A stretch of 64,000 nucleotides of DNA from assembly GCF_964204645.1 (NCBI RefSeq), contig NC_134031.1, positions 16,851,807-16,915,806 on the forward strand, read 5' to 3'. Both the position numbers and the translations under genes were made by a program. Position 1 is the first letter of the stretch; each line of letters begins with the position of its first letter. This document shows, in pieces, positions 3,500 to 51,165 of this stretch. This DNA comes from Tubulanus polymorphus (Eukaryota; Animalia; Nemertea). The notes beneath the pieces are model-generated. The model saw only the letters and a program-made list of their open reading frames with translations, was not told where the DNA came from and did no database searches.

Positions 3500-4560
3500 C
3501 ATGTTGTGAAGATGTCACCGATACGAACAGCCGAACGAACGCCGGCCGACGACGACGTCTTAACGTATTGACTCGCGGGGCGGGCGTACGAGCGTGTGAA
3601 CATACTTAAAATCAAAATTGTCGCCGTTATGAAAAAAAATAAAAGCCGCTCGACTCGATGTAGCATTAATCTTGTCGTACCACGACAATCATTTCAATAA
3701 GAATGCGGAGCGCACGCGCCGCTGACAAACCGAAAGGCCCACGCTGAGTCCTCGCGACCGTGAGACCGGACCGCGGTTTCAACCTGTATACGATATATCG
3801 GTTCCTCTTATTGTTGACTTTTTAAATCTCCGAAAAGCTTTCGATATATTTATACGTACGACGACCTTATGAACTATGTTCTCCCACGACTATCGAAAAC
3901 AAATACCACCGGGGCCCTATTCACGGCACACGATGCGGGCACAATCGAAAAAGGGCCAACAAAGCGTGTGCCATCACCTAAAGCTATTTAATGCGTTGGA
4001 CTTTTAATTTTGATACCCCGAGACCAGGTGAAAAGCTTCTAGCGTGTGACATTAAAAATGCCGACCAGGACTTCGGGAGCTGTTCGACGATAAATCACCA
4101 CCTGCCCGATTGGAAGTTTCCCATGAACCGCGGAGACACGAGCACCTGACCCCGCACTGGCCTCAGTCAACCGACGCGCGACCCGACGTACACGCTTTAT
4201 CGCACACGTCAACCGACCACGATGAAAAACAAGCGAAAATTTCATTTCATTCATTTCACACGCACTAGTGTTCACTGACCAGAATAAGCCCGTATTTATA
4301 AAGTGAAATGAGAAACTTCGACGCGATTTCGAAACGACGAGTCTTTTGATCGAAATCAACGAGGAGAACGAAATCGGCGCAGGTTCCGACTGTTCGACTC
4401 GATTTCAACTGACGTATGTCCTGAACGCGAGATTATCGATGCGAGTTTTTGTCCGTAGCTTCAAGTAGCGGCAATTAAAAAATCGTCGAGGGCGCCGATG
4501 AATAGCTGACGCCGATTGAAGATTAATCGCGGTAATTACGTGGTCAGTGCAGACAATATG
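3500..4560. promoter_or_regulatory. CpG-rich, promoter-like tract
   Basis: Many CG/CGCG runs relative to the AT-rich flanks. Lies between candidate first exons on both strands. Confidence 0.35.
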
Positions 4561-4777: not shown

Positions 4778-7700
4778 GTGACGGGATTTGAAACTGATAG
4801 CTCGTCGTCCTCCATCTGTTCTTCGAGGGAACGAATTTCTGGTGGGAAAAAATCGCCCGAGCAAGTACTAGAAATCTTCAGCGCCGCACAATGAAACAAA
4901 GGAATCATTAGCATGAATGACTAGGAGTAGTAAAAATCAGTCACGCGCACACCACACACACACACACACACTCACACTCACTCCGATATACAGATGCAAA
5001 ACATATGCACCTTCTACAGTTTCCATTTAGATGACCTATAGCCGACAAAACCGATCGGTTTCTAACCCAAAAATGATAAGAGGTGGATGCAGACCAGAAG
5101 GTGAAACGCATATACCAGGATCTGTATTCCGGGAGGGGTATTAACACAAAGCGAATGAAACGTAACACCTGCAGTTCGAAAAACAGAAAAAATGCCGAAC
5201 AAAATTCTTCCATTACCGATATATCAGTTCGCCTCGCCACGAGCGAGACAACTCAACACGCGCGCGCAACAATACGAACATCTTTTTCGAACATATTTTT
5301 CCGCTCGCCGAGAAAACAATACTCGCGCTGCTGCGGTTATCTTTCGAATAAAACTTTCGGAAACGCGCGCTGCCTTAATCGCGAAAAAAAAAATATATAA
5401 GCTTCAAGCGAACCAGACGAAACGGTATAATCGAACCCGAAAACTCAACGGGAACTTGCGCGTAATCTGCGCACGCGAGAGACCTTACCCCCTGACCGGC
5501 ACTGTGCCAATATTGCATTTTTTTTCATGAAATAATACTCGTGCTGGTTGTGGTACTAAACGGTTAAAACGGATCTATTCCCAGGACATCTATTGCTAAA
5601 AACGGCACGGGTTAAAGAACATTTTTTCTCTTCGTCGGTTGCGTGCCAGAATTCCGAAGTGTCTACACAATGTTATACATATGATGAAGAGGCCTATAAT
5701 ACCAGGTATACAAATATGTAGTGTAGCATTCTAGGTCAGCGGAGGCTTTTTCACTATCGCTGATTTTCTTTTTCAGAGAAACTTCACGAAAAAATGAAAA
5801 TTCTTTTGATTCGGCGCAAAATACACGTATAATAGACGCAAGGCACTCTCTCCGCGGTCGAACTGCAAGTGTTCTCTCAAAGCACGCCATTGACCTGATT
5901 TTCAAAATGAAAAACTTTTAGGTCAACTCACTCAAAACTAAATACACCCGAATCTACCTACCGGGGTGAAGGAGTTTTGAATTCTTATATAAACGACTCG
6001 GGTGGTCACGAGAATTACGTCTATTTCATTTTTTCCATAACTTTAATAAACTACCTTCTTATTCTGAAGCAGATCGCGAAAATTCAATCCGTGACAAAGA
6101 CCTGAAGTCATCATCATTTCCGTTTGACCTAGTCAATGAAATATTTTTTGCTGTCAGACGTATCACACACATATATGTATATACATTACTCTCTTCATCT
6201 ACAAGCTAGCTGCCTGATATGATTGTAATATAATCATACATTTTTTTGTTCGCCACAAAATCGTGATTACCGAATTGCCATGAGTCTGAAACCAATTACG
6301 CAGCCACCGAGCCACAATACGAAATTAGCCGGGGTTATTAACCCAAAAGACTTTTAGGTGTGACAATAATGCTTAAACACACACCACGAATTAATGTACA
6401 CGTTCGCATAGCTGTAACAAGCAATCATCATATAGGCCACGATGAAGCTGTGTCTATAGAACGCTTATTTAGAATATTTTCAAACAAAAAATCATATCAA
6501 CCGCTATACTGGAATAGATTGGCATGGTTCAACCAACTCGATGAAGGCCCGGCCGGGACTGGCTTATGACAGCTCTTTTCAAACCCACTAAATATATATC
6601 TATATAGGATTTAAAAGATTAAAAGCAAATCTTATTTATCTATAACCAAAATGACACCAAAATTTCGAACTCTCCAGATCATCATCATCTCTGGCGAGAG
6701 TTCAAAACCTGGTCTATTTTGCTTTTAATTCTTGATAAATAGAATTCATTTCAATTTCTTAAATTCTGTATTTGTGGCTTTTAAACTTATAATCTTTTCT
6801 CCACGTGGGTGTGCAGGGTTTTCAGCGTACCACTACAGCCATTTTCTTGTTTTTATCTAACCGAGATTCATTTATTTGGATAACCTGTAAAATAACTTAC
6901 TTGCAGTAAGGGTTGCCGGTAACAGGGGTGACACATTGTTGATTATTCTTACACGGGTTCGGACTACATGACCGAAATACTCCTGAAATGAGAAAAAACC
7001 AATCAACGCTACTTTAAATTTCAGCGATCAGATTTATAGAGAACTTTTTTTTTTCTTGAAGAAAGCAGGTTAGGCTAGCTAAACTGTAATTTACCAGGAG
7101 AGAGAGTACTAGCGCAAGAAAAAAATTATTTGTTTTTATGAAATAGGAAAGAAATATAGAGGAATGAGTCAGGGGTGATGTAATGAGTGTTTGTATACGC
7201 AATAGTATAGTATAGTAAACTATATATCTAACAGGTAACAGCATACCTAGTAATATAGTTTTGTTGCGAGTGGGTTCAGCGGCGCAATAGCAATAAATCT
7301 TACCGATGTAATTTAAAGGAGATGGTCTGTATAGGCCTGGTAGATTTGACATGAAAATGCATATTCTTAACCAATGCGCTCAAAAAGTGCACAGCTCTGT
7401 CTTAAAATGGCTACAAATTTGAATGATGATGTGTCTGAATTGAGCGGTGCCATGAATCTCAACTCGTCTATTTTCAACATATATCTTATAGTACGCCTAT
7501 GTTTTTGACTAGTCAAGCGATATAACGCAAATTCGATAAGACTACGCGCAAAGAGGATACCATTCTTACTATCATATCTATAATGCTTCACGAAGTTAGC
7601 TCGAAGTTAAAGACCTGAAATGAGTTAGCAAACTATGTGTGTTTTACATGCTCAGTTCATTTCTTCGGTATAAGAGCGTGGGAAAGTGTGCAACTCATCT

Positions 7701-10700
7701 GTAAGCTACTATAATTCGCATGTAATAAATCTGTTCTGATTTTTCACTATCACAAAAGGATCGATCTCATAATTATCACATTTCGCTAGTGATTAAAATT
7801 AATAAACGGTTTTAACAGCAAGTTCATTTTCACGGCTTATAGGTGATCTAACGCCTTTGGTGAATTAATCTTCGCAATTAGTTAATTAAAGGTATGAGCA
7901 TGTGGGTAAACAATCACCACTAATTAACAAGAGCGCTATTAAGTACTCAATTAATGAGGAAATTCAATGCAGGTGTTTATTGTAAAGATCACTTAGAGCA
8001 ATCTATTTCTCTGACAACTGTTACAATTCTTACAAGATCTTAATTTTGTTTGTCAAATTCTAGTAGGAAGACATAAAATGTGTATTTTTTTTTTCATAAA
8101 GTTGTTTTGAAAAGCTACACAGTGTAAAAGCAAGCGCGCAGTTTGAGTCATTTATTAGAAACCGTGAGAACGGGGTCAAATTTTAACCAGTTTGTATGCA
8201 TGTGTAGTGAAGAAGAGAAGAAGGTATACTTCAGAGAAAATCTGAATATTGGCCAAGGGGCCAAAAAGCTCCAAATCAAATATCAAGGGCGACAGACAAT
8301 TAATTCATCTTAATGGAGTATATAAATACTGTATTAGATTCTCAAATTCCTTGATATTAAAGTCGATTTAATTGTTAATCAATGAAAACAGTATACACTC
8401 TTTTAGTATAGTATCTTACCTCGTACACTGGCTATCAAGCTGAATAGCAGGCACGCCAGCCAAAATACCCTAATATTCCACCGATGCCGCTTCATTCCTG
8501 CGGTAAAAACACTACGACAATTTTAATCCGAACATAAGGAAACTTTAAACCGAGCCGACATGCGCTGTCGACGTGCAGGCGACGAGTTATCCGAGTTTTA
8601 AGAGACGTGTTTACTATTCACCTCCTCTCACTGAACAAAGTTATTAACTACTGTCAAAGTAGTGCGCGCAATTGCTCCCATTGATATTCATTCGCCAACT
8701 TGAATGTGTGGTGCGGTCTGTCCAGAGCGCGTTCAGATAAATCTACCCGCTATTAATATGAATGGGATTTATAGCATATTCTAAGGCTTTGAAATTATAT
8801 TCGTGCTTTTTATAAATGTCTTAATCGGAATAAGCCGGTTTATGGTTCAAAAATTTAAATCCTCATTGATTCTGGACTACACAATCAGCGCACGCGGACA
8901 ACCGCACCACCTACGTTACCCAAACTTAAAATTTATTAGAATAGTTACGGTATGGTACTTCAGTATGTCGCACTTTCATGGTACATTACCTAAAAAATTC
9001 TCGCAAACATGGCTAAACATTTTGGAATACACAACAGAAATGTCTTATTCAAACCCATGCAAAAATCACAAAGATTTGATAGGATCCAGGATTGGGCATA
9101 ATATTTTTTGATAGCACCCATGTCAAGACCAGCCGCAAAATATTGATGTCAAATAGATGATTTGAGACCAAAACTGAAATTGCGAAACAAACACTTTAAT
9201 CAGAAGAAATAATGAATATATATCGATGTTTTTCGAGAACCTTAAACGATCTATCGCCGGTCTGCATTTTGCGAACCCGATTTACAGACAGCCGACTTTA
9301 AGTATAGGGTCTCATAGCTTTTGAGTGTTAATGTTGACATGAATCGTTACGGCATCAATTAGACAGCACGTGTTCTACGGATGCGAGTACAGCGACGACA
9401 TTTCTGTTGACAGGCGTTTAATTGGTGAATAAATTTCACACGACCATTTGGCATGGGCCGTAACAGTACCCGGCATGTGTCTCAGCACGCGACTCGCGTG
9501 GGTACAGACTTCAAAATGAAGACATTTTTTTCAAAAGCGAGAGGTTTCAAACAGCTACTACCAACAACACGACGCTCTGGGGAATGAATAATCGAACCCT
9601 CGTCATATTTTTTATTCTGTCCCACTGGTTTTTCGGTTTGAGTAAGAATTAGTTTACTACAAAAAATACATTTCATGTTGGTTTCTGTAGACAAGTGACT
9701 GATGTCTGATATAATTGAAGTAAAAACCCACAGAAAAACTGGATAAGAAATTGACGTTTCAGTCCAATTATATAAGCCGTTTTCAAATTGGTTTTTAAAA
9801 TTCCAAAATGTTTTTGAAAATGGCCCATAGCATTGGACCGAAACGTCAATTTCACATAATACACACAATATCACATCAACGCACCAATCTAAATTAATCT
9901 CGATTAAAGAAATCTTCCCGGCCGAAATGTAAGGTGAACAGACTTAATAGCATCGCGGGTTTTTATACACCATTTTGCGACTAGGTCTCATTTTGATTTT
10001 GGTGCATCGTAATAAACAACGTTGATAGCATATGCTAAGAGACAATAATAGTTATGGCCTGGCGACTTGTATGTTTGTTTTTGTGTATGTATATATCGAG
10101 GTTCGGGTTTAATTCTTTTTTTTTTCAAGTACCTGTTGAACAATTGCACGCAGTCTTTTGTTGAATTAGCCATCGAAAAACTGTGACTTATCACTAAAGT
10201 CCACACGACTGGTACTCGATACTATAGATTTGTGACCTCATTGATAATGTGTATTGGGGGACCTGTGAGTTGCTATGATATACGATTTTGAGAGACGGTT
10301 AACCAGCCTAAAATTCTAAAACCCGCTTACAAATTCAGAATTTAAAAGCAAGATTTATCATTTAAAAAAAACCAAAAACGGAGGACACAACGTTTCGAGC
10401 TCCCACGAGATATCATCTTCAAATATGAACTTAGAAGTTCTGTGTAGTTTTGTCACACAATCAGGTCCCCGTCTAGAGGAGGGCGGTGTTAGTCTGAATA
10501 CCAGTCGTTGTTACCGGTTCCCTACAACCGGTTGTTTGTAGAACGACGGCTAGGTACTAATAGCGGTGTGTGACTGCACATCCCAACGATGCTGGACTGG
10601 TCCAACTCCAGAATAGAAAATATAGGCATACATTATATTATGAAAATCCTATTGTTACCGCGTTATTGTTACTCATCTTTCGAAACACCTTGAACTTTAT

Positions 10701-38420: not shown

Positions 38421-41047
<2,627 letters not shown>

Positions 41048-45200: not shown

Positions 45201-48200
45201 AGAATATACTTGCCCCTGGCAATCGGAGGACAAGTGCTTAGATGGGACCCTGAGTATGTACAGTGGTTGGTTTTGTATATTTTCAGGATATTTGTCTGAT
45301 GGCGCAGACGTTGGAGAAGATATTCTTACAGAAAGCGTCGTTGATGCCGCCTGAAGAAATCGAAGTGATACCGGCTCAAAAGAAAACGGTGAAAGCAGCA
45401 GCTGCACGTCAAAATCAAGGTCAAGGCCAACGCGCAGCAGCAGTTGCTGCAGCAGCTGCCGTGGCCAATCAGATGGCGCCGACGCCTTCTCCGCCTCCGC
45501 CGCCCCCTCCGGCGGTTATACCGGTGCCGATTGCCGCGACTAACGCGTCGTCGTCGACAGTCGCTTCATCGGATTCAGCAATCGTTGTGCCGACCCCTGT
45601 AAGTACTAGATCTTACTATAATACTCTCCTCAATACCATTACTACCAAGAGCTCAAATTATTTTCAATTTACTCAAAATGAGTAATTAAAAATTAAAATC
45701 AAAATGAATTCTGATGCATTTTCGACTATACTACTGTTTTCGATGTCTAAATACTGTCATTCGTGCTGATAAATACTATGAAGGGATACTCAAAGAATTC
45801 TGGTCTGCTGTAAGCTGAAACCAGTTCATTCTTCAAGCTCCCGTTGTAACAGGAGCTTTCACAAGAGCCGTCAGACTAACAGCTGTCACCATTGTTACTT
45901 ACTGCAAATGCTAGACTCCTGTGAATGATTGTATAGGACTAATCATTGAGTGATTTCTATCGTCTGGATTGTGAAAGAGTATATATATTCCCAGGGCCCA
46001 GTTTCACAAAAAGGATTAAGGCCTCAATCGATTTAAGATAAACTGAATTAACGAAGGAATTAAATCGATTTAAGAGTTAAACTTTTTTGTGAAACTGGGC
46101 CCAGTACCTTAAATTAGCTGTTTGTCTCGAAGGCTGATTACGACGCTCGGACCCCTTGTGTGAAATTGAGGACAATTTCAAATATTGTTTCTGAATTTAA
46201 TATATCAATTAGACGAAAAAAGGAGTGAAGCGTAAAGCGGACCCGGTCGGCGGTAAAACGATGGTACTACCTCCGACTCAGACGACGTCCGTAACGCCGT
46301 CGCCGTACGACTTCCCGTCGTTCGACGAGGCGACGCCGGTGAAAGTTCAGAACCGACGCGAGAGCAGTCGTCCGATCAAACGTCCGAAGAAAGACCTACC
46401 CGACGACCAGGCGCAGCATAGTACGAAAAGCAAAAAGGGCAAGATGGGCGAGCAAATGAAATACTGTAACGTCTTGCTGAAGGAATTGTACGCCAAGAAA
46501 CATGCTGTAAGTTTTATTGTTGTCTCTTAAGGAAACAGGGTGGCCACTCACCCGGCAAACACGGGCAATTAGAAAAATCAGTGAGAACTCTGAGAATTTG
46601 ACAGATTTTGCCATTAAAAACCTGGAAATAAGGGAATTTGGATATGTTTTCAATACGGGATTCATGAAGAATGAATAAATTCTGACATTCGAAAACAAGG
46701 AATTCCTCGGGATTTACTTGGGTGGAATTATAACATGGAAAAAAATCGGCGATAACTGGGATGAATCGGTGTAAAGTGGAATCCCTGTGAAAGAAAAAGT
46801 GTTGTGAATTGGGTAGAGAAATTATAGCTATTCTCCTCGTGTGATTTACAGGGTTACGCGTGGCCTTTTTATAAACCGGTCGACGCGTCTCTACTCGGCT
46901 TAAACGATTACCATGAAATTATTAAGAAACCGATGGATCTGGGCACAATAAAGGTAGGAGTCGAATTTGAATATTTCTAGTTAACTAACAGGATTCTTAC
47001 GGATCAGGGAAAAAACTTGGAGCCCTGAATTTAATTTTCCCTCAAGGGAATTTCTGGTATTCTGACTTATCTTGAAAATCATGGAATTTTTGATGTGCGG
47101 TTCTCGCTGACTTGAGGAACCCCTTTAAGAAGAAACTGAGGATGTCTTAAAATGTCAATTTTCAAAGAAAATCTTAGATATTCTTGAGACATTTGAGATT
47201 CCCTGATCAGTATGAACCCTGTTGTGAAAGAAATACTAGTAGAATTTAGAGATTAACGACGTGTGTAATTTTTAGACGAAGATGGAAACGCGTGAATATA
47301 GGATGGCGAACGATTTCGCCGAAGATGTACGATTAATATTTACGAATTGTTACCGATATAATCCTCCCGATAGCGACGTTGTGGCGATGGCTAAAAAATT
47401 ACAGGTACACGTATATTTTAATCGTTTCCATACTCTGATGCTCCTTTGCCTTAAGAAAATAAAGATATCACAATCTGGTGTATAGTGTATGAAGCACCTC
47501 GATATTACACCTATCTGCCCCATGGCACAGTGTATGCGTAGTTACTGAGGCAGGTTACAATTGGTCTCTGCCGAATTCTCTTCTGGTGCGTTTGTTTCGA
47601 CCAGAATTTACTCAACCTGTTCCAGATATGCTCAATCTGTAAATCAGCTATAACCAGGCTGGTAGAGAGGTCCTATTCCGGAAATACAAATTCGGAGTAC
47701 AATCGGAAACCTGCCTAAGAGTTTGAAATGTTTGACTGGTGCTGCCATCTTTCCAAATGTATATTAACTGTTCAACAGATGGCAGCACTGTATGGCTTGT
47801 CCATTATACGCCGTATTGTGTGTGAAATGCACTGAAAGGGGTTTTCTATAGGTTTGAGATCGAACTTATACAATAGATACGTGTAAAGCCTTGTGACATG
47901 ATTATAACGAAGTTGATTGATTGTTTTAGGATGTGTTCGAGTTACGGTACGCTCGGATGCCGGACGAACCGCTCGTCTCGGAGAACGAGCGCATGAAGGG
48001 CGACTACAGCGACAGCGAAAACTCGGAGATGTCGGATTCGAGCGATTCGGACGACAGCGAAGCCGAACGCGAAAAACGTCTGCGCGAATTGCAAGAGCAG
48101 GTAGGAAGAATATTACTTGATTTCTCTATTCGTGACGTCGAGGGTTAATTCGATAGAAAGGGTTTTGTTCGTGATTATGATAATGATGAGGTTGTGCCTA

Positions 48201-51165
48201 TAATCATGCGTGTCATCTGACCCCGGGTTTCGGCACCGGTTGACGTTTTCTGCCGACGTTTTGCCGGCTGTAAACTGATCCTGTGTTTGAATTCCGACGG
48301 AATGATCTTTGGACTTCTCTGAAACATTCTCATTTCCCTGATGTGTGGCGATCCTAGAATTGTATGCGATTATTATTTGTTCTTAGAAATACTGCGTTCT
48401 TTGATCTTTCATATATTTATTCGAGAAAACTAACAACTGAATTGTGAAAGATTTTGATTTCGATTTTTTGACAGATTTTGTGAAGAGGTTTTATCAATAT
48501 ATTATTTAGAAAATAAGGGACTTTTTTATTTGCTGCGCGTCGACCCAATCTGGTCACTGCCTGTATCAGAGATTGATACGAGAAATGTATTGTTTATTTT
48601 CAGCTCAAAGCGGTTCAGGAACAATTAGGTCAATTAACGCAGGAACATTTAGCTAAAAGTCGTGAAAAACAAAAACGTAAAAAGAAAAAGCGGGAATCTC
48701 GGACTGATCGAAATAACGATAAGGATAAAAAAGTGGAGCCGATCGCTCCCGTGGCGACATTGCCGTCGACGACGGCGTACACGGCGCCGACGTCCGCGTT
48801 GCCGTCGATACCGACGCCGTCCGGAGCGGCGGTCGCGGCTGCGGCGCCCGTCCTCGGTTCGAACGTTATATCGCCGTCGGTACCCGCGCTTGTGTTAGAG
48901 ACGCCTAAAGCGGCGAAATCGGGCGCCGCGCCGAATAAAACGAAAGCGAACGCAAAGACGCCGAAAACGCCTTCCGGTTCGACCGTCAAACGACAGCGGT
49001 CGAACAGTAAAACGTCGAAAAAGAACAAAACGGCGACGCCGGCTTTCGACAGCGAGGACGAGGACAATGCGAAGCCCATGACATACGACGAAAAACGGCA
49101 ACTTAGTTTAGACATCAACAAACTGCCAGGTGAGACCATCCGGGAGTTTGTTTAAAAAAAAAATGACGGATTTTACTAAACGCACCGGCGGATTATTATT
49201 GAATTATTAATCGATATATATATATATAACAGTGTATTTCTAGTCATCGGGAGTCGAGCGGTAATTTCTATTCGCTTATTCGCCTCGTGGCGGATTTGCG
49301 AATTTAACGCCGGCTTCGGATTTGTATATACGATAGACTCTGCTCAAGTCTGATCTTATGAACCACGAAAATTCGTCGAAATTCCGGACGATATTCATTC
49401 AGTTTGAATTTCCTCATTGTCGGCAAAATAAATTTAAGATATCGATCTAACTTGAGCGCAGTCTGTTATAGTTTCGTTCTAGTCAATGGGAGTGAAAATA
49501 TTTATTCTATTGTTAATGTTCGTTTAATAATCAGTGAATATGTGTTTATTTCGGTCGTGAATTCAGACTGAATTATATCTATTTTATAATATGAATAAAA
49601 AGGGCATATATACACGTAATTATAGCGACGAGTCAGACGTTTTAAATGTCAATTTCGATGTTTTATTTTCAACAATGTGGATCGATGTTTTTTTTTTTTC
49701 GATGCCCCGATCCCCCCGTTCTGGTCACCGTTGTTATCCAAGCTGCAAGAGTTAAATGATGAGTTTGTACCAAATCATGCGTGTCATCTGACCACTGATT
49801 GTGTAACTCGTAAAACCGCGTGGATAACGACGTTCTGTCGCTTGAAATGCGATTACGAGTTATCATCGGCTGGTATGATCATTGGGCTTCTCTGATGACC
49901 CCTACCCGCCCCCTTTTCAAATCATTAATCGCAAATATGTCGAATGGAATCTCTGCACTCGCGCACGCACACACTCAAAGAAGGAAATTGAATAATAAAA
50001 AGGTTTTTTTATCCGTTTCGAAATGCAAGGTAACCATTTATCACTGTTTATTTTCGCTTGGAGAGTTGTGCTCGCGCAGATTTTCTCGATGTGTTTGCGT
50101 TAGAAATTGATTATTGATCTATTAGGATTATAAGGTCATTAAGAACAGCTGAACTCGCGCGCTGTCGCTCTCGTGTTACACTCCATTCCACGTCGAGTTG
50201 TCGAGTTCGTTGATTGTAATATCTATCGCTGTATTTTTATAGGTGATAAGTTAGGACGGGTTGTACACATTATCCAGTCCCGTGAACCGTCCCTACGAGA
50301 TTCCAATCCTGATGAAATTGAGATAGACTTCGAAACACTGAAACCATCGACCCTTAGGGAGCTGGAAGCGTATGTGATGTCCTGTCTGAAAAAGAAAAAG
50401 TTTTATTGTAAGTATTCGGAAAAAAGCGCAAACATTATCGTTATCGAAAAAGTGCGTAACAATTCACGTGAACCTGGCGCTTTATTTTCCAGCCAAGAGA
50501 AACACACCGGGCAAATCGAAACAAGAGCTACAAAAAGAGAAGAAACAAGAATTAGAGAAACGATTACAAGACGTGACCGGACAATTAGGAGGCAGCACTA
50601 AAAAACAAACCTCAACGAAAAAAGGTATCGTTCGAGTTCTGATATCAATCGTCGAGATATTTTTCGCGACTGCCTCGCTTGCATGGTTCCCGGCCTTAGT
50701 ACTTGGTAAAAAAAAACTTGGGAATTTTGATTATTTCACCGTTTGAAACTAATTTGGGAATTTGATCGAATTTCGTCGAATCAGGGAAATTGGAAATTCA
50801 TTTACCGACGGCTACTTTCTTCAATTTTTCTTTTGAAAATTGCCATAACCCGATAACCAAGTGATATCGGTATCTGTTCATTTTCTTGAGGGCCCTATTT
50901 CCATTGGGGAAGATGGAAAAATCACCAATTTTTAATTCATGTAACTACATGGGAGCCATGTTTGCAGAGGTCGGCATCGAACGTTTCTTTCGTTGTTCGT
51001 TGTTTAATCGCGCGTATGTTGATTTCAGAAGAAAGTTCGCACGTTGACGTCGTCGGCGGTCACAGTCGTCTGAGCGCCAGCAGCAGTAGTTCGTCGGACA
51101 GCGACAGCAGCAGTGATAGCAGTTCGAGCGATACGTCAGATACGAGTGATTCGGAATCAGGTTAG
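42297..51165 (+). CDS. BET short isoform ending ...SDSESG-stop by read-through of the 51160 donor
   Basis: TCAG|GTTAG reads GGT TAG if unspliced. Followed by ~3 kb of UTR-like sequence and AATAAA at 54136 and 54161. Confidence 0.7.

Follow-up and report, generated by a model that had tools for sequence, protein, structure and literature searches.

Why should two small guide RNAs lie in neighbouring introns of a gene for a BET protein, and does that placement mean anything for the gene or for the RNAs? The question is raised by a stretch of 64,000 nucleotides (nt) from the nemertean Tubulanus polymorphus (RefSeq assembly GCF_964204645.1, contig NC_134031.1, forward-strand positions 16,851,807 to 16,915,806; hereafter the window, with positions counted from its first letter). 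Here, two consecutive introns of a BET gene each carry an element with the hallmarks of a small nucleolar RNA (snoRNA) of the box C/D type. We consider it likely, with a probability of about 0.85, that both elements are intron-encoded box C/D snoRNA genes and orthologues of vertebrate SNORD10 (mgU6-77). This had been the original prediction for the locus, and the sequence, the best-matching Rfam family, the pairing with the predicted targets, the Pfam domains of the host and spliced RNA contigs all agree with it.

The BET introns and their two guide RNAs

The host gene lies on the plus strand, as do all of the features described for it here, and its exon translations contain two bromodomains (PF00439) and an ET domain (PF17035), which together mark it as a BET gene. 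An exon at 47931..48100, supported by its reading frame and by RNA contigs, encodes the end of bromodomain 2 and an acidic, serine-rich stretch. It is followed by intron 1 (48101..48603; GT..AG, 503 nt), which falls between the residues ...LQEQ and LKAVQEQ.... The exon between the two host introns (48604..49129) ends with the start of the ET domain, as indicated by a weak Pfam BET match over residues 158-175, and is supported by RNA contigs and by homologues elsewhere. Intron 2 (49130..50242; GT..AG, 1113 nt) then lies just before the ET-domain exon (50243..50400, continuing past 50400), which matches Pfam PF17035 with 62 bits and is likewise present in RNA contigs. Contigs of two runs of T. 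polymorphus RNA (X4 and X5) contain both splice joints, 48100/48604 and 49129/50243, which shows the gene to be expressed and each snoRNA to sit in sense within one of its spliced introns. Coverage from two other runs, X2 and X3, looks unspliced or genomic.

Copy 1 occupies 48183..48322, beginning 82 nt from the 5' splice site of intron 1, and copy 2 occupies 49756..49895, 626 nt from the 5' splice site of intron 2. The span from C box to D box is 140 nt in both, and the boxes follow in canonical order and spacing. In copy 1, the C box ATGATGA (48183-48189) is followed by the D' guide CATGCGTGTCAT (48205-48216), the D' box CTGA (48217-48220), an apical hairpin with the loop GUUUU (48252-48268), the C' box ATGATC (48302-48307), the D guide (48308-48318) and the D box CTGA (48319-48322). 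Copy 2 has the same arrangement and the same D' guide CATGCGTGTCAT (49776-49787), placed between its C box ATGATGA (49756-49762) and D' box CTGA (49788-49791); an apical hairpin with the loop GUUCU (49828-49840), the C' box ATGATC (49875-49880), the D guide (49881-49891) and the D box CTGA (49892-49895) complete it, and its flanks can form a 4-base-pair (bp) terminal stem, GUUA/UGAC. The 11-nt D guide preceding the D box reads TTTGGACTTCT or ATTGGGCTTCT in the two BET copies.

The two copies are 87% identical over the C-to-D' module and 90% over the C'-to-D module, compared with 48% in the 80-nt middle, and conservation is thus confined to the functional modules; the earlier claim that the copies share only their working parts, at equal spacing, is borne out. 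Box motifs are short and common, and intronic sequence could in principle resemble them by chance. This explanation has already been refuted: the 268-Mb genome contains exactly four occurrences of the 16-mer made up of guide and D' box, in every case within a full box C/D setting, and the reversed control occurs zero times. Likewise, a covariance model (R1), built from the copies in T. polymorphus and two other species, matches exactly five loci genome-wide at E <= 2e-19, with copy 1 scoring 112.6 bits and copy 2 scoring 134.9 bits.

Family assignment comes from several directions. At the gathering threshold of the Rfam SNORD10 family (RF01290; 37 bits), Rfam yields no match anywhere in the window. 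When 1.9 kb of sequence was run in E-value mode, SNORD10 accounted for the top two matches, one per copy and each over the full length of the model. BET-hosted copies from two other assemblies provide a bridge, in that those of L031 score 47.7 and 42.5 bits against SNORD10, above the cut-off, and that of L040 scores 34 bits, and the copies of both align with the window copies in R1. The Rfam model at its cut-off therefore overlooks the window copies, and a model of the R1 type recovers them.

Vertebrate SNORD10 shares with the worm copies its box C/D architecture and length of some 140 nt, an identical D' guide core (CAUGCGUGUCAU and then CUGA), the same predicted targets (U6 C77 and one cytidine of the large-subunit ribosomal RNA, LSU), and a long internal region with an apical hairpin and GUUCU loop. 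The differences are equally clear. The spacer between C box and guide measures 13-15 nt in the worm and about 4 nt in the SNORD10 consensus, the worm's D guide (UUGG[A/G]CUUCU, related to LSU 2810-2821) is absent from that consensus, and the worm carries five copies in comparison with one in vertebrates. Finally, the hosts differ, with BET and PA2G4 serving in the worm and, as had been stated from the outset, EIF4A1 in human and Xenopus (PMC9394076, PMC8609340).

Folding lends further support to this kinship. The short terminal stem beside the boxes keeps compensatory changes across copies (GUUA/UGAC, GUUG/CAAC, GUAA/UUAC, UUAU/AUAA) and is present as a 4-bp stem with such changes in copy 2 and in the PA2G4 copies. 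Between D' and C', an apical hairpin with the loop GUUYU and a covarying stem of 4-6 bp (CGAC/GUCG, CAAU/GUUG, CAGU/ACUG, CAGU/GCUG) occurs in 8-9 of 10 sequences, and the same motif is visible in the Rfam SNORD10 consensus. An additional pairing of the loop sequence GUUCUG with U6 (at the ACAGAG box) or with LSU near the target was considered and set aside, as it reaches at most 5-6 pairs, which is the level expected by chance.

Two side observations concern the BET gene itself. One X4 contig (420 nt, depth 104) covers window positions 49104-49523, starting in the exon and breaking off inside intron 2 at 49523; the spliced form has a depth of 80.7. This end may represent either intron retention or an internal 3' end, and in the latter case it would yield a BET protein without the ET domain, from a transcript ending upstream of copy 2. 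The claim that both copies lie upstream of the gene's short/long switch is true, as a trivial consequence of their position. Inspection by eye of the list of open reading frames also points to a WDR5-like WD40-repeat gene upstream of the BET gene, with exons at about 38421-40228 on the minus strand.

Predicted targets of the D' and D guides

Targets were sought in U6, LSU, U1, U2, U4 and U5 sequences taken from the T. polymorphus genome. Between the D' guide and U6 nt 73-82 there is an unbroken run of ten Watson-Crick pairs, in which C77 faces the guide's fifth position counted upstream from the D' box. The guide's best site in LSU is 2838-2849, with 12 pairs that include G·U wobbles at guide positions 1 and 6 and with C2842 at the methylation position; this site lies in the universally conserved stretch ...UAGUGACGCGCAUGAAUGG.... 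For this guide, U1, U2, U4 and U5 contain no site comparable to those in U6 and LSU. The dual pairing that had been proposed is thus reproduced on the worm's own RNAs. The guide has a U at positions 1 and 6, which pairs by Watson-Crick rules with U6 and by wobble with LSU, and a CA at positions 11-12 that finds a partner in LSU only. With U6 favoured at one end and LSU alone served at the other, the guide looks like a compromise between two substrates.

Each of the two predicted modifications has a precedent. The LSU C2842 site is presumably that of yeast 25S Cm2197 and human 28S Cm3680. In yeast, C2197 is guided by snR76 (PMC3116282), and in human, C3680 is guided by SNORD88 (SNORD88A/B/C; PMC10911272). 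If so, these snoRNAs probably address the same LSU cytidine, although they differ from the worm RNAs in being dedicated to rRNA: a full Watson-Crick LSU guide of their kind is lacking in the worm copies, which pair with LSU through two G·U wobbles and find their perfect partner in U6. For U6, SNORD10 is the assigned guide for Cm77 in human (PMC7960923), and its depletion in Xenopus oocytes is cited in PMC3018821 as abolishing U6 Cm77.

The role of the D guide is less direct. It is kept in all five genome copies with a single A/G difference, and considered in isolation it finds no convincing site in U1, U2, U4, U5, U6, the region of the small-subunit rRNA, internal transcribed spacers and 5.8S rRNA, or most of LSU. 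Its core, UUGGC, is found at -9 to -5 from the D box across lineages, and LSU 2810-2821 (GGUAGCCAAAUG), with G2814 at the fifth position, ranks at or near the top among LSU sites for D guides from several independent lineages. For example, nine contiguous pairs form in the cyclophilin-hosted group described below, eight in L085 and 11 of 12 in L118, and the same site ranks first of about 4200 for copy 2 and the PA2G4 copies despite mismatches at -3 and -8. It is a poor match for the D guide of copy 1 (rank 79), and the D guides in the BET-hosted copies of L031, L036 and L040 are unrelated. Relative to the LSU target of the D' guide, LSU 2810-2821 is 17-28 nt upstream. Accessory rRNA pairing near the target has been shown for yeast snoRNAs, including snR76 (PMC3116282), and resembles the role proposed here. 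In Tubulanus the D guide is too imperfect to be counted as a methylation guide; most likely it is the decayed form of an ancestral second LSU contact that would serve accessory pairing instead of a second methylation.

Copies in other introns and other animals

All five copies in the T. polymorphus genome are intronic and in sense orientation, and apart from the two in the BET gene they lie as a tandem array of three, on the plus strand, in one intron of PA2G4/EBP1 on another chromosome (G000:C6:17079039-17079887; L020 4940-5788). The identity of this second host is supported by flanking exons that match solved PA2G4 structures (E 1e-19 and 3e-5). The PA2G4 copies are 93-95% identical to one another and 85-86% identical to BET copy 2; copy 1 is 55-61% identical to all the other genome copies. 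Signs of retroposition around copy 2, namely a poly(A) tail and a target-site duplication, were looked for and not found. Genome matches with one mismatch on C4 and C5 were rejected as not being snoRNAs. Between the first and second PA2G4 copies (a and b) is a stretch resembling a tRNA T arm, in which ARAGORN finds no tRNA. The genome also contains a tandem array of U6 genes (G000:C9:11049268-11056704) and one of the U2 small nuclear RNA (G000:C7:13975223-14013011), the latter sharing a chromosome with the window, 2.9 Mb upstream of it, and comprising more than 20 copies with a period of about 1.8 kb.

A survey of BET introns in related taxa had been suggested as a check. BET homologues were searched for exon by exon, with a protein word search that covers products of about one exon's length. 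With the 175-amino-acid exon between the host introns as query, homologous exons came up on long ENA contigs, giving nine usable loci with two-haplotig pairs counted once. SNORD10-type copies hosted by BET genes are present in six further assemblies (L030, L031, L036, L040, L080 and L085), several of them at matching introns. The intron matching intron 1 holds five tandem copies in L030 (after ...LQEQ) and one copy each in L036/L037 and L085; the single copy of L080 lies about 150 nt upstream of the middle exon, which is again the position of intron 1. Of L031's two copies, one occupies the counterpart of intron 2, directly preceding the ET exon, and the other the intron that follows; the one copy of L040 is found one intron ahead of intron 1. 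No snoRNA is present in three BET loci covering the region from bromodomain 2 to the ET domain, namely L029 (the closest by exon similarity), L034/35 and L041. The Dinothrombium BET contig is incomplete upstream, and L038/39 represents a compact, intron-poor BET gene. In L030, the five copies (6181-7807) are near-identical, repeat with a period of about 370 nt, and all have ATGA in place of CTGA as D' box; a (GT)n microsatellite in the same locus (3779-3846) gives rise to spurious, sub-threshold Rfam matches to mir-297 and mir-466.

A separate pattern scan of metagenome contigs, which required at least 6 nt between C box and guide and so leaves out the vertebrate-type arrangement, added 64 loci and widened the range of hosts. 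In 11 loci, whose samples resemble gutless-worm metagenomes, the snoRNA lies in sense in a gene for a cyclophilin-type isomerase with a serine-rich exon. In a further eight, from termite-gut metagenomes, it lies in sense in RPS8, and in five it lies in sense in the gene for EF-2 (EEF2). Among the metagenome loci L065-L126, 38 were left unclassified, and 26 of these are without an R1 match at E <= 0.01.

Host turnover and the meaning of BET hosting

Several observations weigh against the assignment of both window elements to functional SNORD10 orthologues. The Rfam scores, 30.3 bits for copy 1 (E 3e-4) and 24.0 bits for copy 2 (E 0.013), are below the 37-bit cut-off, and the covariance check accordingly upholds SNORD10 as the best family for each copy without reaching the family's threshold. 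The copies lie 281 nt (copy 1) and 347 nt (copy 2) from their 3' splice sites, and this distance of some 280-350 nt is beyond the mammalian optimum for intronic C/D snoRNAs, which is about 70-80 nt. The X4 and X5 contigs come from libraries of the messenger-RNA type, which are expected to miss such RNAs; they neither cover nor exclude the snoRNAs, and a stable RNA of about 140 nt is not seen in them. The terminal stem of copy 1 is weak (three of four pairs in register), with a possible external stem further out. Both middles had been predicted to fold into long stems, and this holds for copy 2, which beats shuffled sequence (z -2.1 to -2.7), and not for copy 1, which is at chance level (z -0.3 to -0.65). 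The D guides of T. polymorphus have 2-4 mismatches to the proposed LSU site. Finally, the third PA2G4 copy (c) has the D' box ATGA and a G-to-A change in its guide (CATGCATGTCAT) that breaks the pairing to both targets, demonstrating that decay occurs in this snoRNA family. Some of these points would also fit one or both BET copies being duplicated, non-functional relics that are not processed into a stable small nucleolar ribonucleoprotein, the work being done from PA2G4: copy 1 is without a good terminal stem, the RNA contigs cover neither copy, the 85-86% identity of copy 2 to the PA2G4 copies suggests a fairly recent transfer, and copy c is decaying. Such relics are nevertheless improbable, given that each copy still has all of its boxes and guides in intact form although copy 1's middle has diverged to 48% identity, a pattern that argues for purifying selection on the functional parts, and that other species retain this snoRNA in matching introns.

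If the BET copies are working SNORD10 orthologues, the choice of targets and the meaning of the host remain to be weighed. The RNAs might guide U6 C77 only, with the LSU match a by-product, whether inherited or coincidental, of the resemblance of U6 73-82 to LSU 2839-2848. Pairing with U6 is Watson-Crick throughout, and that with LSU relies on G·U at positions 1 and 6, beside the target. Moreover, the BET-hosted RNA of L036 (7685-7812; haplotig L037) has the guide UUUUGCGUGUCAU, which lengthens the U6 pairing to 12 bp (nt 73-84) and shortens and weakens that with LSU; it may be a specialisation for U6 alone. As a general account this is unlikely, however: the LSU-only CA at positions 11-12 is kept in T. 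polymorphus, L030, L031, L040, L080, L085 and the vertebrate consensus, D guides from several lineages point to one and the same LSU site, only 17-28 nt away from the D' LSU target, and the genome is without a dedicated, perfect guide for LSU C2842, a search for one having given noise only (five candidates were inspected, and all are without a C box). The dual-target reading stands as the better description of the D' guide. As for the host, the original prediction had linked spliceosome and ribosome modification to BET transcription. A selected coupling of U6 and LSU methylation capacity to transcription of the BET gene would be in keeping with the recurrence of BET hosting in seven assemblies, partly at matching intron positions. 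It is quite doubtful all the same, because the same genome keeps three PA2G4 copies and other lineages use the cyclophilin gene, RPS8 or EEF2, with EIF4A1 serving in vertebrates, and three BET loci spanning bromodomain 2 to the ET domain, including the closest match, have no copy. There is a similarly slim chance that BET is the ancestral host of the dual guide across a wide span of invertebrates, in the same two introns and by selection. Were that so, the supply of a methylation guide for the U6 internal stem-loop would be tied to the output of the BET gene. Vertebrate guides of this U6 kind depend on the 7SK protein LARP7, and BET proteins act on the 7SK/P-TEFb elongation system.

The preferred reading is a more ordinary one. 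With BET, PA2G4, the cyclophilin gene, RPS8, EEF2 and EIF4A1 all serving as hosts, the identity of the host changes often, and the BET location probably reflects this. In part of the animal tree BET is a long-standing host, but not a unique one: at least six hosts are seen for this snoRNA. By analogy with the general box C/D pathway, both snoRNAs would arise within the BET pre-mRNA, be freed after splicing when the introns are debranched and trimmed by exonucleases, and assemble with Snu13, Nop56, Nop58 and fibrillarin. Methylation would then be expected where the target pairs with the fifth guide nucleotide counted upstream from the D' box, that is, at U6 C77 and LSU C2842.

Taken as a whole, the RNA is of an ordinary kind and the host gene alone is new, with no change to how snoRNAs are thought to work; the papers searched contain nothing on BET genes as snoRNA hosts. 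Both the SNORD10/mgU6-77 family and the predicted U6 Cm77 now reach from vertebrates to a nemertean, and the family's range includes many invertebrate contigs, probably of annelids and termites judging from the sources of the samples. The apparent compromise in guide design between U6 and LSU is an old one. The family also offers a clean case of host-gene change, in which BET retains its snoRNA at matching intron positions in several taxa.

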